From Bugula neritina (Eukaryota; Animalia; Bryozoa), in contig OZ037765.1 in assembly GCA_964035545.1 (NCBI GenBank), positions 29,387,504-29,451,503 of the forward strand: DNA of 64,000 bases. Direction: 5' to 3'. This document shows, piece by piece, positions 4,871-44,880 of this stretch. Numbering within the stretch: the stretch's first letter is position 1; each line of letters begins with the position of its first letter. The notes under the pieces are model-generated. The model did not search any database. It saw only the letters and a list, made by a program, of their open reading frames with translations, and was not told the DNA's origin. The position numbers and the translations under genes are program-made.

Positions 4871-7343
4871 TTGTCTGAAGGAGGAGTGGAAGTGTTCCTA
4901 GAGCGCCTAGGTAGTTACTATTTTGCAGTGCAAAAAGTCAAGGCCGAGGCGAAGGTGCATGTGCTAATTCTAGGTCTAAGTGAGAAACAGTACTCACTAG
5001 TTAGAGACCATGCAACTCCAAGAATTCCCTCAGAGATAAGTTACAAGGATTTGGTGGATATTTTGAAGTGACACTTCAAGAGTACGCACAACAGACTGAC
5101 AGAGAGAGGACAATTCCGAGAGATCAGAAGGTCCAACGGTGAGTCTGTCAGTGACTTTGTTGCTAGATTAAAGAGTGCTTCAAGATATTTTGAGTTTTAT
5201 GAGAAGCTCAATGAAAACTTGGTAGAGCAGTTCCGCATGGGGATAAATGACAGTTAAATAAGGGAAAAGCTAATTGACATGCCACTTACTCAGCAAGAAG
5301 ATTCTGAGGAAGTGATAAGGAAGGCTCAAGAAGTAGAATTAAATAGAAAGATGAGTAACCTTTCTATGAATGACCAACCAGCAGTACAAGCAATACAACG
5401 TCGCAGAAGAAACGTGAAACGTGAAACGTGCAATGCCAGCATCGAAGGTGTAACAGTTGAGTTCATTGTGGACGCTGGTGCTTGCGACAACATTGCATCT
5501 GCAGCTACATACCACAAGATTGCTAAGAAGGTGGAATTATTGTTAACTGACAAACAGCTTAATTATGGCTATGGCGCAGAGAGTAAGTTAAACTTACTAG
5601 GCTATTTTAAAGCTAACATTTATGTAAATGGGAAAATAATTGCTAGCAAATTTTATGTGTTTAATGGTAGTGCCAGATGTTTGATGAGTTATAAAACTGC
5701 ATGTGAACTATAAGGTATTTTATATATTACTAGCAGTTTGATTTCTAATGTTTTACCCAGTAATGTTGATGGCATAGTTAGCCAGTTTCCTGATGTTTTT
5801 CAAGGCGTGGGTAAGCTGAAAGGTGTGAAATTGAAATTGCACATTGATCGGGCAGTGAACTCAGTAGTACAACCTGTAAGAAGGTTGCCTTTTGGCTATA
5901 GAAATAAGGTCAAGGCCAAAGTCCAAGAGTTGGTAGACAACGACGCCGTTGAGCCGGTGTCTGGCATAGGTTCTACGCCGGTGAGTCCGCTTATGCGCAT
6001 TCTGCGGGACTCTGGGGAGATCCGACAAACCGTTGATATGCAATGTGTGAATAAGGCAGTTGTGTATAAAGAGGGCAACTTTAATATTGCTGACCCTTTA
6101 TCTAGGCTAAGTTCAAAAAGTAATTGCCCTGCGCCAGTTAATTTTGTAATGAAGATAACAGAGGCACATGCTGACTGCGTGGCAAAATCAGCTGTTCCTA
6201 TTGCTATGACATAGGAGGAGATTAGAAAAGCATCTCTTGATTGTTTATAGAAATAAAACATGTCATTGAGTCATTGAGAGCAGATAGTATGAAGACATGC
6301 AGCACTGCGTATCAAGCTGTAACATGCGAGTTAGCCGAGTGTAATGGGGTGTTGCTAAGGGGTAATAGAATAGTGATGCCAGTTAAGTTAAGGAGTAAAG
6401 CACTTGAACTAGCAAATGAAGGGCACCAGGGAATAGTTAAGACAAAACAGAGAATTAGGACTAAGCTATGATGGCCTGGAGTAAATAAAGATTGTGAGAG
6501 AGTTTGTAGGTCATGTCTAGATTGCTTGAAAGTAAGTTCCCCTGAACCACATACACCCCTGTCTATGACGAAGTTTTCTGAAAAACCATAGGATTACCTC
6601 AGTGCTGATATTCTTGGCCCATTGCCAAATGGCCAATATGTTTTGTGATAGTAGATTACCATAGCAGGTATTTTGAGGTAGGGTTCATGAGATAAATTAC
6701 TGCCGATAGAATTGTAGACTTTCTAGATGTTACTTTCACTAGATATGGTTTGCCAAGTGTATCGAGAACTGATAATGGCCCTCAGTTTATCTCTTCAGTA
6801 TTTCAAGATTTTCTGCATGAAAATGGAGTGAAGTGGCTATCCACTACACCTCTTTGGCCCCAAACCAACGGATAGGTTGAGAGAGTGAATAGAACACTTC
6901 TCAAGTCATTGAAAATTGCTCATAGCAAAGGTCTGTCTTTGCATAAGGAACTAAGGCAATATCTAGTGGCGTATAGGTCTACACCACATAGCACAACAGG
7001 TGTTGCACCATTTTCTCTAATGTTTGGGAGGGAGATGAAAACCAAACTACCTAGTATAAATAGTGAGGTCAATGCTAAATTATTGCAACAGGCAGCTGCT
7101 GACACAGATGCAGTAAACAAAGCAAGAGCCAAAAACTACCCTGATGCCAAGGCTAAGGCAATAGAGAGTGAAATTTCTGTAGGTGACAAGGTATTGTTAA
7201 GGCAGAATAAAACATGTAAACTTGATGCAAATTTTGGGGAGAAACCATGCATTGTGATTGGCAAGGAAGGGTCTGAGTTAGTTTGTGAGGATAAAGATGG
7301 GGTTAGTGTGCGGTGTAATATGACGCTTACCATCGCAGGATAG
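4871..7343 (+). mobile_element. Degenerate Ty3/Gypsy gag-pol relic with stops, frameshifts and the RT/RNaseH core deleted
   Basis: Gag-like VFLERLGSYY...SYKDLVDILK*HF...ERGQFREIRRSNGESVSDFVARLK. Protease VEFIVDAGA. RT N-terminus VRRLPFGYR...DMQCVNKAV fused directly to RNaseH C-terminus VYKEGNFNIADPLSR. Integrase remnants NEGHQGIVKTK, RTDNGPQF, YRSTPHSTTGVAPF. Several in-frame stops. Confidence 0.9.
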
Positions 7344-7935: not shown

Positions 7936-9736
7936 ATAGAACTTGGTGCATTGTATATAACGGAAAAAATATATACAATACAAAATACATATATATATAA
8001 AAAGTATATACGTATGTAATATTTGTCATGATGATGCAGAGGTGCAAGACAAACTGAAACAATTATAGTAAGTAATTTTATTTTATATTTTTGTTGTTGT
8101 TGAGAAGATATATTAAGAAAATTTATACTTAGAGAAACTATTATTGAGAAAAATTGTATCTGAAGAAAACTATTATTTTGAATTGAGAGAAAATTTATTA
8201 ATCATTGAATGTTAAAGCAGCACAAAATTCATATTTGGAGAAATTATTATTTTGAGTTGAGAAAATTTACGTTTGAAGCTGCACAAAATTTATATAAACC
8301 ATCTTATTTTTATTGAGAAATTTTATTAATTATTGTTGTTGAAACTGTATAAACTATAGCCCTATTTGAAGGCTCATTAACTTTGTAAGTTGCTAGTATT
8401 CTATTGCGCAGCAAGATTTCAAAGGATCGCTGGAATTGTTTTCTTTTCTTTTGGTTAATTGGTTATCATCTTTATTATTACTGTAATTTTGTTTCCAAGT
8501 TATTATCATGAGATAGATATTTATAAACAAAGAACATAATCTATAGTTTCATTCCTCGGAGGGACAGGTCTTAAATTTGCCTCCCAAAAATTAATATCCA
8601 GAGTTGCTACCATTACACACATAGAGCCACATATATTATCCCTGCATGAATAATTTTGTTAAAGCCAAACCAAAATTTAACATTTGTGGAGCAAAGATAA
8701 CTCTAAGATTATGCTACATAATATCCTAGTTTTAACTAAATGACATTCAAAATTTTTGCTCATGCAAATTAGGTTTGAGCTTGATTAGTTACGAGCATTC
8801 CTTTATACTGTTTACATGTATCATACACATTTCAGTTACATATATTCATTCACATACTTTATACTACACAACAAACTTCATTTGCATATTCCATACATTT
8901 TAATAATTTAATTTAAATTTATGTTTTTTTAATTTTCGTTCGACACTATGTTACATAAAGTCACGCCTGAAACAAAAAATATACATGTTAATATAAAACA
9001 ATGCAAATAAAATAGGCCAATATCATTATTTGAATAGAAACTCACTAAATGGGCTGATCATCACAAAACATAAATGCAATGCATGCCTATATATAGACTA
9101 GCCACAGTTTAAGTAGCATTGGTTGTAATAGCTGTATTTAAGATAAGAAGTTATCTATCCTGGAACAAAGCATCAAACTATTCAATCCCAATAAAACCTG
9201 AAGGCTCAATGCCAACATATAATTTAATACTTTCACATGATTATAAATGCGATCTTATAGCAAATTATTAGTCATTTGGCAAGGTACTGTAACACTAGCT
9301 TAACATTATGGTAACTTTTCAGTATATAGCAAAACAACTATGATACAACAAGTTTTAGCTCATACAGCTTACCAGCATTGTCTTGACAGCTAGTTCTCAG
9401 TCTAAAGTAAATATCATTACATGAAAGAGGGGATAACTCTAACCTTGAGTCTTAGTAAGATTCAGGCAATTTTAAAGAGAATAAGCTTTAAAACTGGGTA
9501 CTACTGCCCAACACTACAGTATATATAGACTACTTGATACATGTTTTAGCTGAAGCATATTATTCATGCATGTAACTGACTGTGTTCACTGTGGAATAAG
9601 TTAGAGCTTATAGACCCAGTAAACTTTGCTAATCTGATTTTCAAAGGAGCCATGTGAGTAGAACAGCCCTGCAACTCAGCTTAAAAACTCATGGAGATAA
9701 TAACTCCTAGAGGAAAGTGCACGTATACTTTTACAG

Positions 9737-9905
9737 AATAAGTGGATCTGAATCAGTAAGTTGAAGCTATCTTTTGTATCTCTTCTCAGCAACAATACAT
9801 TTTATAAAGTCAACAGACAGTGTTATGTTGTCAAAGATTTTATTCTCAAACTACTAATTCTAGTATACATGCAGATGAGAAGTGTCTGCAGAGAGCACCA
9901 GTCTA
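9737..9905 (+). pseudogene. Decayed extra copy of the nuclease gene's first micro-exon and intron (ATG>ATA)
   Basis: ata agt gga tct gaa tca|gtaagttgaagctatc...tttataaagtcaacag parallels atg agt gga gct gga tca cca|gtaagttgaagctatg...tttataaagtcaacag at 10747-10900. Confidence 0.65.
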
Positions 9906-10026
9906 TAGAGTGCCAAATAGTCAAAAGTTTGCTTATTATTGCATCTCATATGCTTATAATAAAGTATATAGCCATTATTCTCTCTCATATGCTCACAAAA
10001 CGCTCTCATAGGTTCATAATTTGCTC

Positions 10027-10116
10027 TCTCTCTCACACGCACACGCACACGCACACGCACACACACACAAGCACACACAAGCACACACAAGCACACACAC
10101 ACACACACACGCACAC

Positions 10117-10162
<46 letters not shown>

Positions 10163-10197
10163 GCACACACACACTCAAGCACACATGCACACAAGCA
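10027..10197. repeat. Compound (CT)n/(CACACG)n/(CA)n microsatellite
   Basis: Seen directly. Accounts for the spurious HT/VC ORFs at 9761-10237. Confidence 0.97.
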
Positions 10198-10746
10198 CTC
10201 AAAATATATGGTCGCTGAGAAGCTAAACAAACATTGAATTAATCATTCAAAAATATTATAAAAAGTTAAGAAATACAAATTCATCTGCTTTTTAAAGTTA
10301 ATTTCACTTGCACTTAAATTGTACTATAAGATCATAAATTGCTTATTTATCAGCAGTTTAGTGTCTCAACAGAAACAAAATCGAGATTTATAACCTTCAG
10401 CAGTGTAGAGCATCTCTATCACATTATCAACATTGTTGTAAACACATAACATATATGTTGAGTAGGTCAAATACTTTATTAAGCCATATCATTCACAGAA
10501 TTGTTCACAAAAACAAATATAGATCTATTAAGATATTTGTGTAGCATATGTTCTTTAAAATAATATAATAGGAAGATGAACAATGCTTTATTTATTTTGA
10601 TTAAAAAGTCTTCACATTGCTGATGCCAGGCTGCTGCCGGGCAACGTGTTGCAAATAGACAATTGAAATTAATCCACTGCTGACTGTAGGTAGAAGAAGC
10701 AAAACTTATAGCTGCCAAGTTTTAGAGAAAAGTGTACTTTAGCAAA

Positions 10747-11574
10747 ATGAGTGGAGCTGGATCACCAGTAAGTTGAAGCTATGTTTAGTATCTCTTCTCG
10801 TTTCAGCAACAATTGGACGTTTTATAAAGTCAACAGATAGTGTTATGTTTTTTTAAGTCAAGGTTTTTCTTTTCGAACTACTAATTTTAGTGTGTGCAGA
10901 TAAAACTGACTTTAGAGAACAAAAACAACTAATATCTGATTAGCAGTCTACAGGCTAACCTTGTCTGCATTTTACTAAAGCATTTTGAACATAATATATA
11001 CTTTTAGCAGTGTAGCTGCCTTAACAACAACAGAATAGTATTTAAGATGTCTTATGTTATTGATCTATAGGGTTCAAACAGCCCCAACATGCGTAAGGAT
11101 ATCGCGCATGGTCGAAAGCATGAAAAAAATGCTTTAAAAGCTGCTAGCGAAGTGCTTGAGACTGAAATTCGGCCTAAAAAGTGTTTTAAGGATTCCAACG
11201 ACAAAACTGTAATACCAGATGGAGTGACCGAAGATGGTAAGCCAGTAGAAGTAAAGTGTCCACGCCCACGAGATGATGAAAGTAGCCTTTCTGATATGGC
11301 CATAGAAAGAAAAAACTTTTACCTCACCTCAGATGGTGATGTCAACAAGAAAAACTCTGCTTATGATCAAGTTCAAAAGCAAATAGATGCTACAGGTGCA
11401 GATGAAGGTTATCTGGTTGTTTACTATAATGATGATGAAGGAACTGAAGAAACCAAAGTAGTTCCAGTACTAAGAGACCAGGATCGTATCAACCAGCTGT
11501 TAGAGAGAGAAAAAGATAAAGATGATCTTGTGTCTCAGTTCTCTTCATTAAATGTTGCTGATAAAAAATACTAA
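10747..11574 (+). CDS. Spliced lambda-exonuclease/YqaJ-like PD-(D/E)xK nuclease, copy A (~174 aa); exons 10747-10767 and 11071-11574
   Basis: ATG micro-exon MSGAGSP|gtaag splices in phase 0 at ctatag|GSNSPNMRK. Motifs in YqaJ order: HGRKHEKNA, IPDG, VEVKCP, AYDQVQKQI, GYLVVY, VPVLRD. Confidence 0.8.
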
Positions 11575-13811
11575 AAGGTATTCAAGCACTTAAGCAGTAA
11601 CATAAAACAATCAGTAGTATATAGACGTTTTGCACACTTACATGTTGATTTTGATTACATAATAAGTAACTTAAGTTTTGTTTTTTTTATAATTATATTC
11701 TTTTTACTATGCTTAGATTACAATTATATTTTTAAAGCAGGGCAACATTTTCTAAATATTTTTTGTTGGCTCGTAGATAGTTGATTGAGTAGATTTACTA
11801 ATTTTGTAGTAGTAAGTTTGTTAATATACCAGGTGACTGTGAAATCCAAAAGCATATGATATTATATAGTATTATATGGTGAAATCTAAAAGTATGCAGT
11901 ATTATATAGTGAAACTATATATATGCAATTATTATACATAGATTATTTGTCATTTAGTAAAATCTGTTACATGACAAAAATCAGTTTTAGTAAAACAGAA
12001 CCATGATGCAGAGATTGCTATAAGAAATTTAAGCCTACAAGAGAAGTGCAGAAAAATGCGTATGGAAGCTAACCTTTGCTTGCTAGTTTTTCAAATTTTT
12101 ATGCCTGTATAATATTTACATGACTTTTCTTATGTATAACGATAATTCATATATAGTTTCTATAATTTGTGCCAATGTTAGTTTTTCACACCCATGCAGT
12201 GTGCACTATTTATTTGAGAGTTGATCAGGAAAGGTGGTTGAAATATCAGTGACCAAGCAAGGTATGCAAATTGCCACTGAACAATGTCTCAACTCTACTG
12301 TAGACCTCGTAATAAACAACAAGTGACAGAAACACAATTCTCTGAGTCCCAACTCTCTAAACAGCTGGTTATCTGCATTACTTGGTTAAATATATTTACT
12401 GACTAGCTTCCTCAGATTGGATTTTTATGCTTTGTTATAACCTTGAAATATTTCTGTTACAATATGTATGCTTTTTATGATTTCTATGAGTTTACTAGTT
12501 TTATATATTAAATAAAACGTAAACATATATAAAATTATGTTACAACAAAACTATTGCTTGTATACATCAATTGAGAGAATAATATTGTGGTTTGTAGCTT
12601 TGTGACGGACCAATGCTGTTTAGTACTGAGATATTTGTAACTTAAGGGACATATTAGCAATTTAGTTTATTATGTAAACCTAACACAAAGGTGGGTGTAT
12701 GTTACAAAGTAGTTACTGAGTAAGATAGCTACTTCATGTTTATTGGCACTTAATCTTCATATCAATTAAGTGCCATGAGCTTAACTAAATATCTATCAAT
12801 ATTCTGATATATCAGTTCCTTGATGAGAGAAAATTAAACAGCTTCTTGAAGTTCGGGTTTAATATTCAAATATTTGCAATAAGTTCTCTCAACTGCTATA
12901 ATAATAGGAAATCCAGACTTCTTCAAATATACAAAGTACCATGATGACTTGAATTTTCAATGCTATACGCTCTGTATTAGACCAACTATAAATTATTGAT
13001 CGTTGATGTTATTCAAATATCTAGTAATTGACTACCCATGTGAACCTAGTGCTCTAGCTGGTAGACTAGTCATGTTAATAGCATTTCATACTAACAATTA
13101 ACAGTAAGTCCTATTGAGGTGGTTTATCTGTAAAAACTCAAACATCTGGCGTCTCTTGAGTAACTATAACTAAAGTTTTGGCTCGCAGAAAAAGTTTGTG
13201 TTTTGATATAATTTTATTAATAATAAATACAATATTATTATATCCATGCAGCACAGAGTAATAGATCTATATCCCCACAATTATTTTATGCATATAGATA
13301 TTATATTTTTTGATAAAGTACAAAGTAAATGGCTTGAGAAAAGTGAAGCAAAATAAAAATTCAGTATAACAATTACTTAAATTGTAAACTGGCTTAAATT
13401 GTCAATTAATCTTTTTCAAAAAATCTTAAATATAATTTCAAATGCATGCAGGCATTGTTTGCTTGTTGACAATCTAATGACAAAATACCAAGAGTACATG
13501 TGAGTGTATAACAGCAAGAATGCTCAAAGAATTTTAATATAAAATAAATACCTATTATACATTCTAGATTCTATTGGCAGCAATAAAACTGATGAATACG
13601 ACTTGAAGTTGCAAATCAGCTGTAACAGAACATGTTATGGACAGTCTCATTGGTCAGCACAACTGTTGGTTTTAGTATTTGTGAATTCATTCTCTTATGC
13701 ATATTATTCTCTCTGCATTCTTATTACAGTGCTTGCTCTTGCTCACCTGCATTAATAACTATCTTACTGTTATTATTAACCAGGTACTACTATTCTGACA
13801 GCCAGTGTATG

Positions 13812-13872
13812 TGTATAGTCACAATATTTGAGTACAGTCACAATATTTGAGTATAGTCACAATATTTGAGTG
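13812..13872. repeat. 20-bp tandem repeat x3 (gtayagtcacaatatttga)
   Basis: Seen directly, in the spacer between the two duplication units. Confidence 0.85.
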
Positions 13873-15592
13873 TGTACATGACTAATGAATAGACTAAGCT
13901 CCGCCCCAACTTTTATCAAATATTTGCTTATAGCTCCAATGCGTATTTAGTTAGCCATTCTTCATTAATCTATTATCAACCAAGAGAGTGAGCAAGTTAT
14001 ACCAGAATTGTATCAGCTAGATTTGTATTCTATAATCTTGTATAGCTGTAACAAAAAAAATTTCCGAAACCAATAAAATGATTAGTTCCAAATTGTAAAA
14101 CTAAACTTGCCCTGATAAGTATGAAAGCATGTGAAATTAGTTACCAATGTTACATAAAAGTATGCATGAAAGAAATATGCATATGTTAATATAAAACCAC
14201 GCAAATAAAATAGGCCAATTTCTCATTATTTGAATAGAAACTCACTAATTAAAGTGGGCTGATCATCATAAAATGTAGATGCAATGCTGAGACTATATAG
14301 CCACAGTTTAAGTAGCAGCTGTTTGTAATATAATAGTTGCATTTAAGATAAGAAGTTATCTATCCTTGAACAAAGCATCAAACTATTCAATCCTCACAAA
14401 ACCTAGAAGCTCAATGCCAAAATATAGTTTAATACTTTCACATGATAAATGCTAAGTTAGCAAATTAGTAGCCATTTGGCAAGGCACTGCAACACTAACA
14501 TAACATAATGTAACTTTTCATTATATACATTATTAAAATAACTATGATCCAACAACTTTTCTCATACAGCTTACCAGCATTGTTTTGACAGCTAGTTCTC
14601 AGTCTAAAGTAAGTCATCATTACATGAAAGAGGAGATAACTGTAACCTTGAGTCTTAGTAAGAGTCAGGCCATTTCAAAGAGAATAAGCACTAAAACTGG
14701 GTACTATACTGCCCAACACTACAGTGTATATATATAGACTACTTGATACATATGTGTTAGCTAAAGCTTATTATTCATGCATGTAACTGACTGTGTTCAC
14801 TGTAGAATAAGTACGATCTTATAGACTCAGTAAACTCTGCTAATCTGATTTTCAAAGGAGCCATGTGAGTAGAGCAGGCTTATTCAACTCAGCTTAAAAA
14901 CTCATTGAGATAATAACTCCTAGTCTCATGGCCTAGTTTGGAGGTAAAACAGTATATGGAAATTAAAAGAACTCCCTACAACTCTGCTATACCACAATTT
15001 TCAGATATATACAGACACACACATGCACGAACTCTCAGAATATGATTCACAGAGAAGCTAAACAAACATTGAATTAATTATTCAAAAATGTTATAAAAAG
15101 CTAAGAAATACAAATTTATCTGATTTTTAAGTTAATTTCACTTGCACTTAAATTGTACTATAAGAGCATAAATTGCTTAGTTATGAGTAGTTTAGTGTTT
15201 CAATGGAAAAAACATCGAGATTTATAACCTTCAGCAGTGTAAAGCATCTCTATCACATTATCAATCCTGTTGTAAACACATAACATATATGTTGAGTAGG
15301 TCAAATACTTTATTAGGTCATATAATTCACAGAGTTATACACAAGTACAAATAGATCTATTAAGATATTTGTGTAGCATATGTTCTTTTGAATAATATAA
15401 TAGGAGGATGAATAATGTTTTGCGTATCAATTATTGATTGAAAGTTTTTCTACATTGCTGCTGCCTGGTTGCTGCTGCATTGCTGCCGGGCAACATGTTG
15501 TAAATAGAAAATTGAAATCAATCCACTGCTGACTGTAGATAGAAGAAGCAAAATTAGCTGCCAAACTTTAAGGGAAAGCGTAATCTTTCAAA

Positions 15593-18500
15593 ATGAGTGA
15601 AGCTAAAGCATCAGTAAGTTGAATTGCTATATGTTTTGTATCTCTTTTCAGCAACAAGGCATTTTATAATGTCAAAAGATCGAGTTATAATGTTGAGTTA
15701 AGGTTTTTATTTTCAATCTACTAATTCTATAGTGCATGCAGATACCAACTGACTTTCAGTGACAAAAACAATCAATATCGATCAGCAGTCTCGAAATTAC
15801 AGTTTACTATAAATGTTTTTGAATATAATATATATTCAGAAACCAGTGTATATACCAATAAGAGAGAATTAGTCTTTAAGATGGTCTTACGTTTTTTATT
15901 TATAGGGTTCAGCTAATCCCAACAGAGCTAAAGATACAGAGCATGGCAGAAAGCAGGGAAAAAATGGTAAAGAATTAGCTGCTAGAGATGATCCTGAGAC
16001 AAAAATTCCAACAGCACAAGATACGAGTGGAAAGAACGAGCACAACACAAGTGAATCTAAATCAGTAAGTTAAAGCTCTGTTTTGCATCTCTTTTCAGCA
16101 ATTTAAGTTGTTTTATTCTTTATATAGTCAACAGGTGAGTTATGTTAGTCATGGTTTTTATTTTCAAGTTATTAATTCTAGTGCAAGTAAGAACGATTCT
16201 AGAAAACAAAAACAATTAATATCTCAGCAATCTACTTTATTATCTTTTTCTAATTTTACTATATATGTCTTTGAACTATAATGATATACATATCTTCAAC
16301 AGTGTAACTACATTAACAAGAAAGAAAAGTTAGTTTCTAAGATGATCCTATGGTTTTGATTTATAGCGTCCAGGTAACCCTAATATAACACGCGATACAG
16401 CACATGGTCGAACACATGAAGGAAAAGGCTTAAGAGCTGCTGAAGCAGAGTTAATTGAAGTAAAAATTTCACGAAATACAAAGCGTTTGCCAATTTCCAA
16501 TAACAAAACTGTAATACCAGATGGACTGACTAAAGATGGTACGCCAGTCGAAGTAAAGTGTGTATCCCCAAAAGACGTTAAAAGTAGCCTTTTAGATATG
16601 ATCAGAATTAAAAAAAGTCAATTTTACATCGCCGTTACCTTCAACAAAAGCCACAATGCTTACAATCAAGTTCAAGAGCAAATCCATGCTACGGGTAAGC
16701 AGAAAGGTTATTTGGCTGTTCACTACAATGATGGTAATGGTAAGCACGAAACTATAGTAGTCCCAGTACCAAGAGATCAGGAGCGTATCAATAAGCTGTT
16801 ATTGGAAGAGGAAGAGAAACCTATTTGGGATATTAGATATTTGTTCTCTTCTGATCTTGAACCTCATTGCTCTGATGCAATTATAACTGTTGAGAATCAT
16901 GAAAGAAAAGGTTTCAAAGCTGCTAGCAGGGAGCTTGGGACAGAAATGTGGATTTACTTAGATGTAAATAGATTATTCAGTTTAGCAATATAGTTCAGCA
17001 ATTTATTTTAATGGAGACACAGGAACAAAAGAGAGGGATTATGGGTAAAAAGGAAACAGGTTACAAAATGATGTAATATGGAATATATAATTATACAAAG
17101 AACATAACTCCAAAGTAGTAATATAAGTCACTGATTTTCACTATATTCAATACTCCCACATAGTTTAGTTATGACATAAATGAGAAAAAGAAAACAATCC
17201 AAACAAAAACTAAACTAAATACAGAGAAAATAAAGAAAACTAGGTAACAACACATTTAATGCCCAGCATGTTGCGGAGTGCTTGAAATTTATCTCGAGTG
17301 AGGGGTTTTGTAAAAATGTCAGCAAGCATATTTTCTGTAGGACAATATTCAGTTACAATATGTTGATTTTGCACTTCTTGTCGAATGTAATGGAATTTAA
17401 CATCAAAGTGCTTGCTTCTTTTGCTTACATTTGTATTGTTTGCTATACTGATGGCGGATTGATTGTCAATGCAGAGTTTTATTGGGCTTAGTGCCTTGTC
17501 AGTGACATCAAAAAGTAACTGCCGAAGCCATGTAGCTTCTCTGGTAGCATCGAAAGCAGCTATATATTCTGCCTCTGTTGAAGATAAGGCCACAGTTGAC
17601 TGTCGTTTACTGAGCCAGCTAATAGGACCTTTGTTTGCCATAAACACGTTGCCAGAAATGGAATGTCGATTCTCATCATTTTCAGCCCAGTTAGCATCTG
17701 AATATCCAACTAGCTGTTCACCAGATTTGCAGAAGATCAACCCATAATCCATGGTACCTTTAAGATACCGAAGTACACGCTTTGCAGCTGTTAGGTGAGT
17801 TTCAGTAGGAGTTGCGTTGAACTTCGATAGTACTCCCACAGAGAAGGAGATATCTGGACGAGTGGCAATAGATACGTACAGAAGACTACCTATGATAGAT
17901 TGGTATAGATTTCGATCTACCAGTTTACTACCATCATCCTTCACCAGCTGTACGTCACTTGCAAATGGGGTAGCTGTAATGTTGCATTCTGACATTCCAT
18001 ACTTTTTGAGTATCTGTTGAATATAATGCTTCTGATGCAGTTTTAGATATGCACTGTTGAACTCAGCATTTATACCTAAGCAGAAATGAAGTTGTCCCAA
18101 ATCTTTCATTTGAAACTTTGCACGCAGTGATTCCTTGGTTTCTAGCATTGACTGTTCAGTGTCACTTAAAATAACAATGTCGTCAACGTACACTGCTAAA
18201 ATTGTTTTAACATCACCAGCATTACGAACATAAACACATGAATCAGCACTAGATGGGGTAAAGCCAAGAGATTGTAGGTATTCGTCTAGAACGATATTCC
18301 AGCAGCGTGGTGACTGTTTCAGGCCATACAAAGATCGTTCTAATTTACAAACAAGATCTTCATTGCCAGCAGCTACAAAGCCTTCTGGTTGCTTCATATA
18401 AATTTCTTCAGTGAGCTTACCATTTAGAAAGGCAGTGACTACATCCATCTGGTGTATTCTCATACCACGGTTGATTCCATAAGACAGAAGCGCTCTTAAT

Positions 18501-21500
18501 GATGAGCGATGAACAACAGGGGAAAATGTTTCATCATAATCAATACCTGGTTTCTGAGAGTAGCCTTGAGCCACCAATCTTGCCTTATATCGGTCAATGG
18601 TTCCATCAGGTTTACATTTGGTTTTGAACACCCACTTACTACCAATAGCGTTACGTCCAGGAGGTAGCTTTGATAGAGTCCAAGTTTGACTGTTCATTAG
18701 TGCCTCATACTCTTCTTCAGCAGCTTCACACCATTGTTTTGATTGCGGACTAGACATAGCTTCTGACATTGATAGTGGTTCTACAACATCACTAGCAAGG
18801 CAAGCAACATGATTAACATAATCATCAATTCCATACCTAATGACTGGAGAAATATTGCGCTCAGATCTACGAAGGGGTATTTGTTTGTCTTTTGTTGAAG
18901 GTAGGTCAGTTGTGAAGGTTTCAGAGTTATTTTCACTTTGGTTGTTTGCAAGTGCTGGCAGTCCTAATTTGCTTTCATCAAAAACTACATCCCTTCGTAC
19001 TACAACTTTACCATCTTTTGGGTTGTAAAGTCGATATCCTTTTGACCTAAGGCTATAGCCAATCATTACCATCACTTCTGCTTTCTCATCAAGCTTCTGT
19101 CTCAACTCACTTGGTACATGAGCATAAGCCAAAGAACCAAACACCTTCAAGTTACTTAGATCAGGTTTTGAATTATGCCATTTTTGATACGGAGTTGTAT
19201 CCTCATTGCGGTGTGCATTTGTGGGGGCACGATTTCGAACATATACAGCTGTTGATACAGCTTCTGCCCAAAAGGATTTTGGTAGATTTGAATCTATGAT
19301 TAGTGCTCTTGCTAACTCACATATTGTGCGATTGTATCTTTCTGCAACTCCATTCTGCTGTGGGGAATACCGTACAGATAGCTGATGCTGAATACCATGT
19401 GCTCGCAAATATTCTTCAAAACTGCTTGATATATATTCCCCTCCTCCATCGGTCCGCAGCGTTTTCATAGTTTGGCCTGTTTGGTTGGTTACTAAAGCAT
19501 GAAAATCCTTAAAAACATTAAACACATCAGATTTCTCATTAACAAAATACACATAAGAAAACCTACTGTAATCATCGATAAAGCTCACAAAATATTTACT
19601 GCCACCAATAGATGCATTTTGCATAGGGCCACATACATCACTGTGAATTAGCTCTAATGGTCTAGTAGATGTGATAGCATCTTTAGCTTTAAAAGATTTT
19701 CGAGCCATTTTTCCTTTTATACAAGAATCACACAATCCTACACTCACATTGGATAAGTCAGCGCCGGTGACTAGCTTCTCATTGGCCATTCTTCTGATTG
19801 TGCTATGATTGATGTGCGCAAGTCTCTTGTGCCAGACTGTGTTACATGATGCTAGATTTGCTTTGTGATCTGATGTAGTTAGATCTAGGAAGTAGAGTTT
19901 ATTAACAAGTGTTCCCATAGCCTGCACTTGGTTTTGCTTGTTTTTCACCCAACATCTAGAGTGGCCAAACTGTACAATCATACCTTTACTTGCTGCAGAT
20001 TGTACTGAAAACAAATTTTGTCGTAAGTCAGGTACATGAAGCACATCATATAGTGTAGCCTTTCTTTGTACATGTCGGCTGACACGTACTGATATCTTGA
20101 GAGTACCAGAGCCAATGGCATCAACTACTCGACCATCAGCTATTGAGACTTTTTCTGGTTGGTTGAACTTAGTATATGTGACAAAGGTATCAGCAAGTGG
20201 AGTCATGTGACGAGTTGCCCCACTGTCTATCAGCCATTCATGATTGTTTATGTCATACAGAGCTTCTCCCACATCAAAAGCACACTCTTCAGCCTGTGTT
20301 TCTGACTCAGACATTCCCTGGTTAGATTCACCTGCAAACCTGGCTCCATGTTGCTGCCAACTACCACGATTTCTACTATTGTTAGTTGCATTGAATTTAC
20401 CTTTAAATCCTGTGGGGCAATGTCTAGCCAGATGCTGTGGTGAATCACAATTATAACATCTTCTTTCAAGGTGTTGCACATTTCTATTTGGCCTATGCCT
20501 ATGATGACTATCAGCATGCAGAGCAGTATCAGTGTTTTCTAATGCTTTCCCACTGCAGTTTATACTTGCACTATTCAGAGCTTGTTGCACCTTCTTCTTT
20601 TGCTCTTCATTAAGCAATGCATTCTGAACAAATTCTAATGTTAGTGTTTCTGGTTTCTGAGCTTCTAGAGCAGTAACCACGGTTTGATATTCACTTGGCA
20701 TACTGCCTAGAAGAGTAACCACTTGATCCTCTTCAGTTACTGGAGCTTTGATCGCTGTTAGTTTGTTAACAATGTCTTTCATATATTTGAGATGGTTTTC
20801 TACAGAATCACTACTTTTCATAACAGCCCTGAAATACTGCTTCTTTAAATATATTCTGTTAGCCAAAGTATCTCGTTCAAAATGTGATTGTAATTTCTCC
20901 CATGCTTGCTGAGCAGTCTCACATTCAGTTATTAGGTAAATAAACTCGTCACTTACGCTAAGGACAATTTGGCTGAGAGCTTTCTGAGCATTCAGTTTGA
21001 ATGCTTTCTTAGCTGTTTCACCTGTAGTAGGCTCCTCCATACTGCCATCGCAATATCCAAACAGCTCCTTGGCTATCAGCAAGTGTTTCAGTTTAAATTT
21101 CCAGGTAGCATAGTTATTAGCTGTAAGCTTATCTACAACCAGTTTATCTTCCATTTTCTTCTTTTCAGTGTTATGCATTAACTGGGCCCATAACCTGTGG
21201 ATTTACTTAGATGTAAATAGATTATTCAGTTTAGCAATATAGTTCAGCAATTTATTTTAATGGAGACACAGGAACAAAAGAGAGGGATTATGGGTAAAAA
21301 GGAAACAGGTTACAAAATGATGTAATATGGAATATATAATTATACAAAGAACATAACTCCAAAGTAGTAATATAAGTCACTGATTTTCACTATATTCAAT
21401 AAGAAATTCGGAGTTTGATATTTCACAACAGGAAAGTAACACTAGATGCACTGACCAAAAGTGGTGAGCCAGTAGTGTTAAAGTGTGTAAAGCCAACAAG

Positions 21501-21840
21501 CAGCGAAAGTGGCCTTCTGGATATGATCAAAAAAAGTGATTTTTGTATCACCGTCATCGCCAACAAAGGCCAAAAGGTTTACAAGCAAATTCAAAAGCAA
21601 ATTCATGCTACAGGTAAGGATAAAGGTTATCTGGTTGTTTACTACAATAATAAAAAAGGTAAGCAAGAAACCATAGTAGTCCCCGTATTAAGAGACCAGG
21701 AGTGTATTGCTAAGCTGTTAAAGGAAGAGGAGAAGAAGACAAGTAAAACTGGTGAAAAGAAAAAGAAAAAAGGTTTTGAAGCTGCTGAAAAAGTGCTTAA
21801 GAAGGAGGCAAAAGAGGGAAGAGGAGGAGGAGGAGTTTGA
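15593..21840 (+). CDS. Multi-domain YqaJ/lambda-exonuclease-like gene, copy B, interrupted by Copia; exons 15593-15613, 15906-16064, 16367-16946 [Copia] 21407-21840
   Basis: MSEAKAS|gtaag. Exon 2 GSANPNRAKDTEHGRKQGKN...SKS is a truncated module. Exon 3 reads RDTAHGRTHEGKG...IPDG...VEVKC...AYNQVQEQI...VPVPRD, then a second domain NHERKGFKAASRELGTE. Removing the Copia and one TSD copy restores the frame (GTE-IRSLIFHNRKVTLDALTKSGEPVVLKC...VYKQIQKQI...VPVLRD). All introns are phase 0. Confidence 0.78.
17240..21178 (-). CDS. Copia gag-pol polyprotein (1312 aa)
   Basis: Gag with zinc knuckle CYNCDSPQHLARHC, protease WLIDSGAT, integrase (WHKRLAH..CDSC, HSDVCGP, RTDGGGEY, NGVAER), RT (QMDVVTAFLNG, YVDD), RNaseH (YSDANWA, ADIFTK). 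PR-IN-RT-RH order is diagnostic of Copia. Confidence 0.98.
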   Translation of the reverse strand: MHNTEKKKMEDKLVVDKLTANNYATWKFKLKHLLIAKELFGYCDGSMEEPTTGETAKKAFKLNAQKALSQIVLSVSDEFIYLITECETAQQAWEKLQSHFERDTLANRIYLKKQYFRAVMKSSDSVENHLKYMKDIVNKLTAIKAPVTEEDQVVTLLGSMPSEYQTVVTALEAQKPETLTLEFVQNALLNEEQKKKVQQALNSASINCSGKALENTDTALHADSHHRHRPNRNVQHLERRCYNCDSPQHLARHCPTGFKGKFNATNNSRNRGSWQQHGARFAGESNQGMSESETQAEECAFDVGEALYDINNHEWLIDSGATRHMTPLADTFVTYTKFNQPEKVSIADGRVVDAIGSGTLKISVRVSRHVQRKATLYDVLHVPDLRQNLFSVQSAASKGMIVQFGHSRCWVKNKQNQVQAMGTLVNKLYFLDLTTSDHKANLASCNTVWHKRLAHINHSTIRRMANEKLVTGADLSNVSVGLCDSCIKGKMARKSFKAKDAITSTRPLELIHSDVCGPMQNASIGGSKYFVSFIDDYSRFSYVYFVNEKSDVFNVFKDFHALVTNQTGQTMKTLRTDGGGEYISSSFEEYLRAHGIQHQLSVRYSPQQNGVAERYNRTICELARALIIDSNLPKSFWAEAVSTAVYVRNRAPTNAHRNEDTTPYQKWHNSKPDLSNLKVFGSLAYAHVPSELRQKLDEKAEVMVMIGYSLRSKGYRLYNPKDGKVVVRRDVVFDESKLGLPALANNQSENNSETFTTDLPSTKDKQIPLRRSERNISPVIRYGIDDYVNHVACLASDVVEPLSMSEAMSSPQSKQWCEAAEEEYEALMNSQTWTLSKLPPGRNAIGSKWVFKTKCKPDGTIDRYKARLVAQGYSQKPGIDYDETFSPVVHRSSLRALLSYGINRGMRIHQMDVVTAFLNGKLTEEIYMKQPEGFVAAGNEDLVCKLERSLYGLKQSPRCWNIVLDEYLQSLGFTPSSADSCVYVRNAGDVKTILAVYVDDIVILSDTEQSMLETKESLRAKFQMKDLGQLHFCLGINAEFNSAYLKLHQKHYIQQILKKYGMSECNITATPFASDVQLVKDDGSKLVDRNLYQSIIGSLLYVSIATRPDISFSVGVLSKFNATPTETHLTAAKRVLRYLKGTMDYGLIFCKSGEQLVGYSDANWAENDENRHSISGNVFMANKGPISWLSKRQSTVALSSTEAEYIAAFDATREATWLRQLLFDVTDKALSPIKLCIDNQSAISIANNTNVSKRSKHFDVKFHYIRQEVQNQHIVTEYCPTENMLADIFTKPLTRDKFQALRNMLGIKCVVT
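21182..21195 (-). other. Copia primer-binding site GGTTATGGGCCCAG (internal/half tRNAi-Met type)
   Basis: Directly adjoins the 5' LTR on the minus strand. Same motif as the Drosophila copia PBS. Confidence 0.88.
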
Positions 21841-24469
21841 TGTTCATCGCTTAAATATTGATCATGATAAAAAATAATGGAAGGTACTTGAGCACTTGCA
21901 GTAGTATATATATATATAAAACACGTAGATAGCGTAGAGGTTTTTTATACTTATACTATTTATATATACTATGTATACATTATAGTTTTCTATAATGAAA
22001 TATATAAATTATATTGATTTTTATCATATTAAAGTAATTTAACTTTTGTTTTTAATATATATTTTTGACTATACTTAAATTATAATTATATATCTTTTGA
22101 GAGCAAAATTTGGTGAATACTTCTTGTTAGCTCCTGGATAGTCTGTAGAGTAGAAATACTAATTTTGTGGTATAATTTATACCAATTGACTGTGATATCT
22201 AAAATTGTGTAGTATTACATGGTGAAGCTACATAAGCAAACACTATGCATCATATAATATATGATGTTTAGTAGAATATATTATATGACAAAAATCAGTT
22301 TTAGTAAAACATAACTATGATGAGGAGATTTCTATAAGAAATTTGGGCTTACAGAAGAAGTGCAAAAAATACGTAGTTAAATCCTAACCTTTTCTTGTTG
22401 CTTTTTTGAATTATTATGCCTGTAGAATATTTATATGAATTTTCTTATGTATAATGACGATTTATATATAGTTTCTATAGTTTGTGTCAATGCTAGTTTT
22501 TCACACCCATGCAGTATACACTATTTATATGAGAGTTGATCAGTATAGGTGGTTGAAATAACAATGACCTAATAGTTAGATACGCAAATTGCCACTGAAC
22601 AATGTCTCAACCCTACTACAGACCTCGTAATGAACAACAAGGGACAGAAACACAATTCCTCGAGCCCCAACTCTCTGAACAGCTGGTTGTCTGCATTACT
22701 TGGTTAAATCTATTTACTGACTGGTTTCCTTTATGCTTTGTTATAAACTTGAAAGATTTCTATTACAATATTTGTGACTTTTTAGGTTTTTATGATTTTC
22801 CTATCTTTATATATAATAAATAAAACTATAAACATATATAACTTAATATTATAACAAAACTATTGCTCATATATATAATTTGATGAAATATTGTGGTTTG
22901 CAGCTTTGTGACGAATCAATGCTGCTTAGTACATACTGACTGAGACTGAAAATTACACAGCTCCTTGAAATTTAGGTTTAATATTCAAATATTTGCAAAT
23001 TCTCTCAACTTCTAATGATAAGTAATCTAGATAGACTTCTTCATATATACAAAGTTATGATGACTTGGATTTTCGATGCTATACACTCTGTGTTACACAA
23101 CTAATGCATGTTGTTGATGTTATTCAAATATTTAGTAATCGTCTATCCATGCAAACCTATTGCTCTAGCTGGTAGACTAGCTGTGTTGATAGCATTTCAT
23201 ACTGATAACTTACAGTCATATTGAGAATGCAATGATTTGTCTGTAAAAACTCAAACATTTGGCGTCTCTGGAGTAACTAAAGTTTTTACAAGCTGAGAAT
23301 GTTGAAGTTTTTATATAATTTTATTAATAAATAATACAATAATATATCCTGCACTGAGTGATAGATCTAAAGCCCCACAACCACTCTATGCATTTTATTC
23401 TGTTGAGAAAATACAAAGCATATGGCCTAAAAAAGGTAAAGCAAAATATAAGATAAAAATAAAATATAATAATTATCTACATTGAATGTGTGCTCAGTTT
23501 GTTGATAATTCTTTTTTCAAAAACTCTAAGATATCATTTCAAATAGAGGAATTGTTTGCTTGTTTACAATTCAATGACAAATGTAAGAGTAAGTATAGAT
23601 GCATAATAGCAATAAAGAGCAAAGAACCTCAATATAAAATAAATACTCATTACATTTAGCCTTCATGATATCTGAAAAGTATGTATATTAGATCTTTTGG
23701 CACTTGAACATTATCTTGTTGAAAATTAAATTCATTTAAATATAAAAATCTTTTTCATATGAACTACGGGTTAAGCTACAAAGCTACAGACTTACAGATT
23801 AAAGTTAGAATAAATAAATAGATATAAAAATAATAATCTATTTGTTTCAAGCAATTTCATATATGATTATTACCATATAAGATTTAATAGTAAGACATAC
23901 TGTCTGTTGATATATATAAAGCTAGAAATTGGCTAAATGAGTGTATAACACCCTGATTGGCTATAACAACCTAGCAGTTGATATATTACTGGCAGCATAC
24001 AGCTTCATCGCTAACAATAAAGTCCTGGCAGCATGATGTAATGGCACAAAACATGATTTGTATTACTTTATGTACTGTGCAAAGCAAACTACATTTTCAC
24101 ACTTTGATCTCATGTTTTTACAATTTAAATTCACCGAAAGAGTTGCTTTTAGTGACAGCAATAAAGATAATGAATGCATGCGGAGTTTTCAACATGACTC
24201 ATGTTTCTGGGTAACTGTTTGGCTTTTTGAGATTTTCTAATTGCAGTGAAGACAATACAACTCGAAGTTGCAAATCAGCTGTAACAGAACATGTTATGGA
24301 CAGTCTCATTGGTCAGCACAACTGTTAGTTTTAGTATTTGTGGATAATAATAATGGTCTTGGTAGGTCAAAGGTCAGAGGAAGAAGGTCAAATGACCAGA
24401 CCAATGACAGGAAATGCACAGAAACTTGACAAACAAGGAGTAGGTGTATCCAGCAGTCAGCTGTTGTTC

Positions 24470-27400
24470 TTAACCTCTCTCCAGGCGGCAGTTTGTCAAA
24501 CTGACATCATAGCCAGAATAGCCGAGATCACAAACGGCAGCGTTATTGGAGAACGACAGCTCGGGTACATCCATGTTTGGGTTTACATTCAGCTATAAAT
24601 AAAGTAATTATTGGTTATAAAATCAAAGGTTTTAGTGAATAGTTAAAGTTTTAATAAAATGCTTGAAGCTGAAGGTTATATAGAAACATATACAGAATGG
24701 CGAATGAATTTAACGATTGACCAAAAAAATAGGTAGAAATGATCGTCGAGTTTGCGAAAGTAGAGGTTTTTGGGTTTTAACTTCAAATTAAACCAACAGC
24801 ATAACTCAACAGTTTTAAAGAAAAGCAAATTTGATTGGATACTCTTTCTAACATCGACGATAATGCTGGGGTATGATTCACCAGCCTAACTCCGCAAATA
24901 TTATGAGACCAGTGATTCTTACCTTCATGCTCATTGGTCTATAGCTACTTTATTTAACCAATGACAGGACACAATATATTTACAGATTGAGTAAATCAAC
25001 AGACTAACCTTGAAAATATAGTTTCCTGGCTTAAGATCTGTAATATCAATCCATTGGCAGTCAATGTCATGTTTGTACACATCCGCACAGCCAACAGATA
25101 TGCCTGCAAAATTGTATGTGGAAATCATCTAAAGAGATGTTCATATTATTTCAGCTTAAACAAGACTCGCAATAACCGTCAACGTGTATTAAAACATTAT
25201 GTATACAATATTCTATAGAAGTCAATGGTAGCAGATTTATAAATAGCTGCAAAATTACCAGATAATTAGATAAAAAAGTTATTTACGTAAAAATGTATTG
25301 TGCAATTGACTATAAATCATTTCACAGTTTTAAAGAACTATGTATTTGCATGTTCTGGGAATATCATCTTGGGTTTCCATCTAATTAAAGATCCATAGTT
25401 GTTTAAAATTAGCAGACAATTAGTTTAGTTTCAAAATATATTTTTATTTTAAAGATTGATGTTAACTCTAGTCTTCAAACTCTCAAATTATCCTTGAACT
25501 TTCCTTGAATCTGTTAGCTATGATCAAATGTAGTCACTTTATACAGTAGTACCTTGCTCACTGTGGCCTTCACAGGAGTACCTCTTAGAGACTCCATCTT
25601 GACAATGCACATCCTCTAAACAGAAACTAGCTTTGTGTCCTTCTGCTATCCTCACACCTCTGTGGTCCATGACATCATAGTGAGTGAATACATCCATGCT
25701 GTGGTAATGCCTGCGGTACAGCAACAGAGGGTGCTACAGAGTTATGTTGAGTTTTTCTCTTTTAGTATTTATACTGCACATGACTACATGACAGTACTAG
25801 CAGTTTAATTTTAAATGTGATATTATTTTCACCAGAATGGTGGCACACATGCATAGATGTTAACTTTTCAATTCACTAGTTTCAAAGAGCCAAATATATC
25901 AAGTATGGTATAGCATAGCATGCTACATTATCTACCTATCGGAGAGTTATTGCAATTGCCGAAACCCCTAAATAATTCTATTAAAACTTTATGGGTGCTA
26001 ATAAGTAACAACTGAAACTGATACACTACTTTATGCTATAAGAACAATAATCCATCTCTCACAATACTTTATCTTGTGTTCTAGTTATCAACCTCAAATA
26101 GAGATACTAAACAACTTAAGTGATGGTACTGAGATCGCATGATAACACACTCTTATACTGCACTATAAGGTATAATGAGGTTGAAGTGCTGCTGCCTAGT
26201 GACTCACATGTGACAAGAATGCCACTCCCACTGTGAACTGTGCTGTTTTGGTCTAAAGTCAGCAGTTCCATTGTTGAATATACTTGAAGAGAATCTCAGC
26301 AGTCTACGACTCATTTGATTCCAGTCTACAAAATACTGTCTGCTGTAATATATTACATAATATATAATGTCTAGTGCAATACGATATATATAATCTCTAG
26401 TATATACTGTGTTTGTTTGTGTTTGTAGCATTTATAATAAAATTGATGAGTATCTACTCAACTCCGCAAGTGGAATATGCATGTTATTAAAACTTAAGCA
26501 CTAATCTACATTATTCTCTATGGCTAATCAGTAAATACCACCACCACTTGGTCAAAAAAAATTGATACAATTAAATCACCTCTTCGAGTTTCTTTTAGCT
26601 CATATGCAGATGATGAAAGACAATTCTCTTCCATGGCACAGGTTAGATATGCTAAATAGAGGTCCTTTATCCGAACAGACTCGACCAGGCTAGTGATGTT
26701 TGGTATGAGGTCCGGTAGCACTGAAACAAACTGTCTTCGTGTAGTCATACAGTATAAACTAGATCTATGATATTATTGTAATGTGGAGTTGTCACCTTTT
26801 TTATTAGGGCAAGTTTACAGTTGCCCACCAGGGCATCATCATTTGAAAAGATTAATAACTATTTATTACATTGCACTCATGTTCAAAGTTTAATAAGTTT
26901 TTACATCATGAATATTTTGCTAGCTGCTTAATGTAGCGTCATGTTTAATAGGAAAGCCATACATTCTCTGTATATGCTTAAAGCAGTATACTAGCCAGTG
27001 AATAGAAACCACATGCTTAAAATTTCCGAGCATTGATTGTCTGAATAAAGTTATTTGCCTCAATTTCTGCCATGTGTTAAACGATTTTATTAAACCATTA
27101 GGAAAAAGAATTGTAACAATCAATATATGTAGCAGAACATTTGGTAATTATTTTCAGAAAATCTTCGTCATGGTTTTAATAATTAAATTCTCTAACACTG
27201 GTATAGCTGCTGGAACCAATTAGAAATTTTATTTCACGGAATTTTAAGGCAAATATTTCACTGTGGATAAAAAGTTGAGATGAATAAAATAAATAATAGC
27301 TATAAGGACTAGATGTGCAGATTGTACATGGTAAATACGTAGGCTGAAAATTCGTACTAGTGTTACGCCTTGCTGTTAAATGGACATGCATGGTACAACC

Positions 27401-37200: not shown

Positions 37201-37623
37201 TAACACTATGACTATGAGTATGAGTATGACTAACAGCATAAGAATTAAGTTGAACTTGAAGAAGGCTGAGACTCAAAAAAAGTATCTCACCACGGACGCA
37301 GTGACATAGTTTGTTACATAATCCCAAGGTGCGCCGTATATACGTCTAAAAATGTTTTTTGGATGTAACTCTGGTATATATCTTGGCTCATTTTTGGATA
37401 GAACTTGATCTTGGATCCACTGGTGTCTCAACGCTCGGTCTTCGGCAGTCATTTTAAAAGGTAATCGTTCTCTTTCAAATGGAAAAGGTTCTATAGTCAT
37501 AGGAGGCAACTTGCTCTTTGAATAGTACATCTCTCGAAAAACTCTCTGCCTTCGCAACCATTCTGCTTTAGTTGCTTCTACATGAGCTTTTGGATCAAAC
37601 TTTGCTACACTATCGCCGGCCAT
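34209..37623 (-). CDS. NDUFB6: NADH:ubiquinone oxidoreductase subunit B6 (B17); exons 37623-37291, 36411-36310, 35252-35196, 34307-34209
   Basis: ERERL..MTAEDRALRHQWIQDQVLS.NEP, NIFRRIYGAPWD, a TM segment followed by YMKHNESSWEQAKGF, and C-terminal DFYNRGF match invertebrate ND-B17. All introns are phase 0. Confidence 0.9.
35645..36279. repeat. 26-bp minisatellite (~24 copies, atgcacacaactacacagacrtggac) in NDUFB6 intron 2
   Basis: Head-to-tail units without spacers. Accounts for the repetitive ORFs at 35665-36338. Confidence 0.97.
36528..36753. mobile_element. MITE-like element with imperfect terminal inverted repeats in NDUFB6 intron 1
   Basis: gtcatttcgcacacaagtcgttt (~36537) is inverted as aaacgacttgtgtacaaaatgac (~36723-36745), with extra aaacgact subrepeats. 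No clear TSD. Confidence 0.55.
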
Positions 37624-44849: not shown

Positions 44850-44880
44850 TGCGCACCGCTCGGCAACTAGTTATTCGAAA

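Follow-up and report, generated by a model that had tools for sequence, protein, structure and literature searches.

Nucleases of the YqaJ type occur in phages, in large DNA viruses, and in the transposons of animals. A 64,000-nucleotide stretch of DNA from the bryozoan Bugula neritina (GenBank assembly GCA_964035545.1, contig OZ037765.1, positions 29,387,504 to 29,451,503 of the forward strand), referred to here as the window, carries reading frames with the motifs of these enzymes, and the question that the locus raises is whether such frames belong to the animal, to a mobile element, or to the remains of one. An earlier note on this DNA, made from its letters alone, had proposed that a nuclease derived from a virus or a transposon was domesticated here as a family of spliced host genes. 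In the analysis described below, the locus resolves into two genes on the plus strand: gene A, which encodes a single nuclease domain, and gene B, whose last exon encodes two domains, B1 and B2, and is now split by a retrotransposon. At a probability of roughly 0.55, we favor the explanation that a Bugula-type bryozoan has here a host gene family restricted to its lineage and derived from a nuclease of the YqaJ/lambda-exonuclease type as carried by eukaryotic transposons.

Identity of the encoded nucleases

The list of open reading frames (ORFs) for positions 9000-24000 contains three plus-strand frames that bear the motifs of the earlier note, at 11089-11574, 16487-16993, and 21415-21840. The motif order described there, HGRKHEKNA, IPDG, EVKC, YDQVQKQ, YLVVY, and VLRD, is present in exon 2 of gene A (11071-11571) and recurs slightly changed in B1 (16367-16945). 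All searches used single exons as queries, exon 1 with its 7 codons being too short for searching.

The assignment of these motifs to the YqaJ/lambda-exonuclease branch of the PD-(D/E)xK nucleases is upheld by several lines of comparison, the Pfam family PF09588 itself remaining sub-threshold. PF09588 matches gene A exon 2 with an E-value of 8.8e-4 and 20.0 bits over profile positions 50-149 of 150, the curated cut-off being 22 bits, and the Pfam scan gave no PF09588 match for B1 or B2. An exhaustive phmmer search from exon 2 against 1.8 billion representatives returned 31 proteins, including one spurious match to a long repeat protein (P0019). Seven of the ten matches that were scanned with Pfam have a strong PF09588 domain (57-102 bits), and the PF09588 proteins reached in this way are P0017 (E-value 5.6e-10), P0021 (2e-6), P0022, P0023, P0027, P0031, and P0032. 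When a profile made only from Bugula sequences was aligned by hhalign with one built from seven genuine YqaJ domains, the match was scored at 99.6% (E-value 5e-25). A hidden Markov model (HMM) built from the same seven domains recognizes gene A with an E-value of 1.3e-29, B1 with 1.7e-18, and B2, from position 90, with 4.2e-14; the motifs are therefore not a product of chance.

Structure prediction leads to the same family. An AlphaFold (AF2) model of the gene A exon-2 domain from a 31-row alignment has a predicted local distance difference test (pLDDT) score of 93.8. Foldseek aligns this model with lambda exonuclease at an E-value of 2e-6, a probability of 1.00, and a template-modeling (TM) score of 0.63-0.67, and a structure comparison gives Z-scores of 13.4 to residues 52-206 of LHK-Exo and about 12 (12.1) to residues 70-218 of lambda exonuclease. 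A first AlphaFold run with ten Bugula sequences only had reached a pLDDT of 65, and its Foldseek matches were non-significant with chains of lambda-exonuclease type ranked at the top; a sequence search of the PDB with the Bugula-only profile likewise found nothing significant, lambda exonuclease appearing at an E-value of 1.5. Language-model features and ESM-Atlas shapes also indicate YqaJ clusters.

The active site of lambda exonuclease consists of Glu85, Asp119, Glu129, and Lys131 (PMC7496540). These four residues align with E18, D50, E60, and K62 of the bryozoan domain, which are kept in both A and B1 together with Q100 and Q102. The gene A protein amounts to the catalytic core only, that is, helix 1 with the motif-I Glu, the strands bearing the Asp and the Glu-x-Lys, and the Y-x-Q-x-Q helix. 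B2 does not keep this set of catalytic residues and reads LDA and VLK for PDG and EVK.

The missing N-terminal segment

Throughout the family, every YqaJ match begins at about profile position 50, which is equivalent to residue ~70-76 of lambda exonuclease. The YqaJ HMM, run over all six frames of the window and of contigs L004, L006, L007, L008, and L009, detected no N-terminal YqaJ piece. In lambda exonuclease, Trp24 and Arg28 form the 5'-phosphate pocket, and Arg45, Lys49, and Met53 line the channel (PMC7496540). The bryozoan proteins lack the entire segment that holds these pocket and channel residues, so that the chemistry would be kept and the apparatus for 5'-phosphate-guided processive digestion would not. 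A trimer prediction with three copies of the gene A exon-2 protein scored 0.01; it was made without controls and carries no weight in either direction.

Gene A and its transcripts

Gene A occupies positions 10747-11574 of the plus strand and consists of two exons with a product of 174 amino acids, which is of cytosolic type and has no signal peptide. Its parts are as follows.

10747..10767, plus strand: exon 1, an ATG micro-exon of 7 codons (MSGAGSP), phase 0; the orthologue P0001 begins MSGAGP.
10768..11070, plus strand: intron, GT..AG, 303 nt, phase 0; skipped in contigs of runs X1, X2, and X5, retained in DNA run X16 as well as in the genomic contig of B. neritina.
11071..11574, plus strand: exon 2, 167 codons and stop; an N-terminally truncated domain of YqaJ/lambda-exonuclease fold with E18, D50, E60, K62, Q100, and Q102.
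11575..12533, plus strand: inferred 3' untranslated region, end approximate; RNA-type contigs of X1 and X2 span 11071-12533 and then stop.

Gene A is transcribed and spliced. The transcript evidence comes from sequencing runs of a sister lineage, one of them labeled RNA-Seq and the others presumed to be RNA, in which contigs were accepted at a likeness threshold of 85%. The RNA-type contigs start at about 10703, reach 10761, and then jump to 11071, and this joint, 10761 (+CCA)/11071, is found in contigs of three runs (X1, X2, and X5) and is absent from X16, the DNA run of the organism itself. Because it is missing from genomic contigs, the spliced form is best read as mRNA. The three extra letters at the joint fit exon 1 of the orthologue (MSGAGP), which indicates that the gene A intron is spliced and that there are no more 5' coding exons; one spliced contig of 866 nt begins in the 5' leader, reaches the 3' region, and contains no additional 5' exon. 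The ATG micro-exon and the phase-0 intron, which the earlier note had inferred, are confirmed for gene A by RNA-type contigs. Of the three junctions proposed there, the one at 10767/11071 is seen in these contigs; RNA support was not obtained here for 15613/15906 and 16064/16367.

Gene B and the Copia insertion

Gene B lies downstream of gene A on the same strand, and its last exon is divided by a retrotransposon with long terminal repeats (LTRs).

15593..15613, plus strand: exon 1, predicted from sequence (MSEAKAS); same form as exon 1 of P0047.
15906..16064, plus strand: putative middle exon of 53 codons that arose in an internal duplication of ~461 bp; its 3' end was once an exon 1 and has ACA in place of the ATG; an X2 contig runs unspliced through 15743-16123.
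16367..16946, plus strand: last exon, first part; domain B1 with motifs intact and the first helix (NHERKGFKAAS) of domain B2; 87% amino acid identity to P0047.
16947..21401, minus strand: Copia-type LTR retrotransposon inside the last exon of gene B; LTRs at 16947-17152 and 21196-21401, gag-pol ORF at 17240-21178.
21406..21840, plus strand: last exon, second part; domain B2, with PDG changed to LDA and EVK to VLK, an isoelectric point (pI) of 9.8, a Lys/Gly-rich tail, and the stop.

The reading frame of gene B at 16946 resumes at 21406/21407 across the target duplication, with the first helix of B2 (NHERKGFKAAS...) lying before the Copia element and the remainder of B2 after it. In relatives free of the Copia element, namely P0008 (JGI contigs L004/L005) and P0047 (B. 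neritina EB796_024635, 309 amino acids), the protein is uninterrupted at the insertion point, and the apparent third copy is for this reason domain B2 of gene B. A separate third gene copy at 21415-21840 is accordingly ruled out, this frame being the second domain of gene B as severed by the insertion. In its present state, gene B of this genome is cut short, as its frame runs into the LTR and ends at 16993.

The Copia element itself is complete. Its gag-pol ORF is intact (1312 amino acids; Pfam Retrotran_gag_2, Pol_BBD, rve, and RVT_2), its LTRs are direct repeats of 206 nt that are 100% identical, and a 5-bp target duplication, AGAAA, is found at 16942-16946 and 21402-21406. Identical LTRs together with the 5-bp duplication mark the insertion as very young, and it is absent from L004, L005, and L021. 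About 18 further copies of the LTR at 90% identity or above are present elsewhere in the genome, and the family looks recently active. The earlier note had reported neither a transposase nor terminal inverted repeats nearby; the former statement has to be withdrawn in view of a complete Copia element with integrase and reverse transcriptase at 16947-21401, and the latter stands, as no inverted repeats of at least 40 nt occur in 9000-25000.

The upstream structure of gene B is less certain than that of gene A. The putative middle exon stems from the ~461-bp internal duplication, which by the repeats and by comparison with L021 is specific to this genome; in B. neritina, the annotated orthologue P0047 consists of just two exons. 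No spliced form of gene B was found in the RNA-type runs, coverage being empty at 16300-16699. The JGI B-type contig L004 is about 83% identical to the gene B described here, below the 85% threshold, so that this blank is weakly informative at best; the NCBI orthologue L021 is 92% identical over B1. The second domain is dead and basic in P0007, P0008, and P0047 as well (pI of the dead domains 9.1-9.8), and because the dead domains of B2, P0008 (P0008d2), and P0007 (P0007d2) form one clade with support of 100/99 in the tree, the architecture of one active and one dead domain must be old.

Host gene or mobile cargo

The copy number and the surroundings of the family both bear on whether its frames travel with a mobile element. 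In this 216-Mb assembly, protein and family-profile searches find the family at one locus with three domains (A, B1, and B2), and the DNA of the 5.2-kb unit has local copies only, except for a dispersed repeat of 125 bp. The only transposition genes nearby belong to the unrelated Copia element, which was inserted later. The B. neritina contig VXIV02000638.1 (L007) is collinear with the window from a 7tm_3 gene through an old, shared retroelement remnant to gene A, at about 90% identity. PF09588 occurs elsewhere in the genome in at least 10 dispersed full-length copies, some of which have identical frames of 334 amino acids. The short family forms one clade (support 94/88) that includes four marine-metagenome relatives and stands apart from the full-length YqaJ copies of the genome and from the fusions of Mutator-type transposase with YqaJ. 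A scan of IMG/VR with the family profile found no relative.

The single locus, the lack of dispersal, the synteny, and the separate clade make the domestication of a transposon-type YqaJ nuclease the best reading. With the spliced intron of gene A and the absence of flanking inverted repeats, they bear out what the earlier note had supposed, a domesticated host gene rather than transposon cargo, and the copy-number and synteny check proposed there returned one locus here, syntenic with B. neritina, and no dispersed transposon with terminal inverted repeats.

Tandem units and evolution of the array

The local tandem duplication claimed for the locus is real and can be delimited as two units, the second being divided by the Copia element.

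9126..13686, plus strand: tandem unit A; promoter region, gene A, and long 3' region; collinear with unit B at 70-88% identity.
9731..9876, plus strand: exon-1/intron-start relic lying 5' of gene A; resembles 15586-15743 and 16049-16182 (75-77%).
14331..16946, plus strand: tandem unit B, left part, ending at the Copia insertion; from blastn against unit A; collinear with the Copia-free orthologous contigs L004 and L021.
21407..24345, plus strand: tandem unit B, right part; B2 and 3' region; blastn matches to unit A 11209-13686 at 71-96%.

Coding identity between the units is 70%, against a flank identity of 75-88%. The upstream non-coding stretches 9126-9710 and 14331-14923 are 88% alike, and the coding stretches 10766-11520 and 16063-16819 are 70% alike, with a synonymous divergence (dS) of ~0.55. 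Either gene conversion in the flanks or a faster evolution of the coding part could account for this contrast. Positive selection, as deduced from a coding divergence that exceeds flank divergence, was not adopted, as gene conversion of the flanks explains the pattern equally well.

In word-indexed protein searches, named relatives were found in Bugula neritina only, and all of them are annotated as hypothetical protein. The B. neritina array is larger than the one described here, with more units on two contigs, some with motifs intact and some with stops or frameshifts. Short-form relatives with the same truncated start are P0009 and P0012 (contigs L006 and L009, from one TARA metagenome sample) and P0010 (contig L008, from a Logan run), at 34-43% identity; given these marine sequences, the family may extend beyond Bugula. 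The catalytic residues are kept in A, in B1, in their orthologues, and in the long-branch proteins P0009, P0010, and P0014, and P0012 has the Asp and the Glu-x-Lys with the motif-I Glu replaced by Cys.

The ratios of nonsynonymous to synonymous divergence (dN/dS) are given below.

A orthologues: dN/dS 0.445 (dS 0.12)
B1 orthologues: dN/dS 0.69
B2 orthologues: dN/dS 0.79
Paralogues: dN/dS 0.53-0.62 at dS ~0.55

Between the gene A orthologues, all 18 of the 18 replacements fall within the first 95 residues, and the last 72 residues are identical. These values would fit a gene A that is fast-evolving but constrained and a gene B that is weakly constrained. The family evolves at one syntenic locus by tandem duplication, internal duplication, and decay. 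An amplifying gene family, as the earlier note had pictured it, describes the locus in part: copy number does vary between lineages, but amplification is not apparent here, with gene A intact, gene B freshly disrupted, and several degenerate copies in the array of the relative.

Possible function and alternative explanations

If the catalytic residues work as they do in related enzymes, A and B1 would be metal-dependent nucleases with the two-metal chemistry of the PD-(D/E)xK fold. Because the pocket and channel segment is missing, they are unlikely to act as 5'-phosphate-guided, processive, toroidal exonucleases, and a distributive cutting or trimming of nucleic acid would be the more plausible activity. 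Where a protein is of the gene B type, its basic, dead domain with the Lys/Gly tail may act as a built-in nucleic-acid-binding partner. Since copy number varies and the proteins evolve fast, a role in degrading foreign or mobile nucleic acid is our guess, to which we would give clearly less than even odds within the host-family explanation itself. The defense effector and the selfish toxin module that the earlier note considered are likewise guesses.

Several points weigh against that explanation. The curated Pfam cut-off is reached by none of the domains (A at 20 against 22 bits, B1 and B2 without a match), and the alignment behind the high-confidence model contained true YqaJ domains. The B. 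neritina array includes copies with stops or frameshifts. The dN/dS values of 0.45-0.79 come from few substitutions and are compatible with weak constraint. The RNA support derives from a diverged sister lineage, consists of contigs instead of reads, and concerns gene A only.

The alternative that survives best, though we consider it unlikely, is that the locus is a decaying relic, in which unequal crossing-over multiplied a trapped ORF of transposon origin that continues to be transcribed with no organismal function. The truncated domain, the dN/dS of 0.69-0.79 for B1 and B2, the degenerate B. neritina copies with stops, and the internal duplication and Copia insertion of gene B all speak for such a relic. 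It accounts poorly, however, for the catalytic residues kept in A, B1, their orthologues, P0009, P0010, and P0014 (P0012 having Cys for the motif-I Glu), for paralogues that at a dS of ~0.55 have a dN/dS of ~0.55 and not ~1, for the 72 C-terminal residues of gene A that are identical across lineages at a dS of 0.12, for the spliced mRNA, and for the confidently predicted fold.

Improbable, to a greater degree than the relic, is a non-catalytic protein that binds nucleic acid or regulates and keeps only the nuclease fold, as domains of the B2 type do. Such domains (B2, P0008d2, and P0007d2) have lost the Asp and/or the Glu and yet persist as a clade of basic domains with Lys/Gly-rich tails, and the 5'-phosphate pocket is lost in the family, but A and B1 retain all core residues (E18, D50, E60, K62, Q100, and Q102), for which there would be little reason without catalysis. 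A bolder version of the host-family explanation, which we hold to be similarly doubtful, would see here a bryozoan-specific genome-defense system, with a YqaJ core reduced to the minimum and no longer dependent on a 5'-phosphate, a tandem array evolving by birth and death, and, in the two-domain members, the active and the dead basic domain paired as a built-in asymmetric dimer directed against foreign or mobile nucleic acid.

A true recombination exonuclease of the lambda-Red type, processive, toroidal, 5'-phosphate-dependent, and working with a single-strand annealing protein, is very improbable: the best structural and sequence matches are indeed lambda exonuclease and LHK-Exo, but the counterpart of lambda residues 1-~70, with Trp24/Arg28 and Arg45/Lys49/Met53, is absent, and no gene for an annealing protein is evident among the window ORFs, no profile search having been aimed at one. 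Mobile cargo, with the ORFs belonging to a transposon of ISL2EU or Mutator type or to a virus-derived insertion, is largely refuted and hardly credible, as the animal Mutator-YqaJ fusion proteins among the nearest non-family relatives and the dispersed full-length YqaJ copies of the same genome, which could suggest it, are outweighed by the single locus with non-dispersed flanks, the lack of inverted repeats (at least 40 nt, 9000-25000), the conserved synteny, the intron, a family clade distinct from the transposable-element copies, and the absence of an IMG/VR relative.

Relation to known nucleases

The bryozoan proteins share the PD-(D/E)xK fold, the catalytic residues, and the Y-x-Q-x-Q helix with lambda exonuclease (Red-alpha) and LHK-Exo (PDB 1avq, 3sm4, and 3syy). 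They differ from lambda exonuclease in starting at the equivalent of residue ~70-76, in being encoded by intron-bearing genes in an animal chromosome, and in having no partner annealing protein seen among the ORFs. Relative to PF09588 of phages and bacteria, of which gene A matches only positions 50-149 of 150, the family lacks the first third of the domain.

The second ORF of ISL2EU transposons encodes a YqaJ domain protein (PMC4482050). YqaJ proteins of eukaryotic transposons, comprising those of ISL2EU and the fusions of Mutator-like transposase with YqaJ (P0023, P0027, and P0032), are the closest relatives outside the family and have the core in common with it; both groups also have an animal-type insertion (..dG..lNKk.H..) before the Y-x-Q-x-Q helix. 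The transposon proteins, however, have the full 150-position domain with a W..R..TAS start and are multi-copy, dispersed, and linked to a transposase, whereas the bryozoan family is truncated, single-locus, syntenic, spliced, and a separate clade. The viral alkaline nucleases (herpesvirus SOX/UL12 and baculovirus AN; PF01771) and enzymes of the Cas4/MGME1 type have the same fold at a greater distance (Z-scores 7-10), are far larger, with extra domains or Fe-S clusters, and show no specific sequence relationship to the bryozoan family. Within the library of papers searched, a literature search on YqaJ in Bugula, on its domestication, and on eukaryotic genomes found no description of a host-domesticated YqaJ nuclease.

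Other features of the window

Two ordinary host exons lie on either side of the array, one encoding the 7tm_3 domain of a class-C G-protein-coupled receptor (8-517, plus strand, E-value 3e-40) and the other an NDUFB6-like subunit (37273-37623, minus strand, E-value 3e-8). The retroelement remnant between the 7tm_3 gene and gene A consists of fragmented ORFs at 5279-7343 that are protease-, reverse transcriptase-, and integrase-like by eye and have no Pfam match at an E-value of 0.001 or below; since it is shared with the B. neritina contig at about 90% identity, the insertion is old and happened before the lineages separated. The dispersed repeat within unit A, at 9904-10028 (about 125 bp), resembles a short interspersed element or a miniature inverted-repeat transposable element and has at least 40 genome copies at 88-94% identity; a (CA)n-type microsatellite at 10023-10214 adjoins it shortly before gene A. 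At 35665-36337, a 26-nt unit is repeated in tandem, with about 25 copies at 93-98% identity, and this array yields long artefactual ORFs.

A complete Ty3/Gypsy LTR retrotransposon is located at 38117-45199 on the minus strand, with a pol ORF of 1642 amino acids (38869-43797) and a gag-like ORF of 301 amino acids (43944-44849). Its LTRs show 100% identity along a stretch of at least 300 nt, and dozens of 100%-identical LTR copies, in pairs ~6.8 kb apart, are found on all large contigs, which points to a very recent burst. Its G+C content is ~60% in a genome of ~33% G+C, and this odd composition raises the question of a recent arrival from elsewhere.

Significance

The locus alone does not reveal a new kind of system, and it also marks very recent Copia activity in the genome. 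Its value is that of a clean case of domestication, in which a nuclease family occupies one syntenic position, has gained an intron, gives spliced mRNA, is stripped down to its catalytic core, has an old form with one active and one dead domain, and changes in copy number between sister lineages. For the biology of the family, it would provide a tractable entry point to what the lambda-exonuclease core does without its 5'-phosphate pocket.

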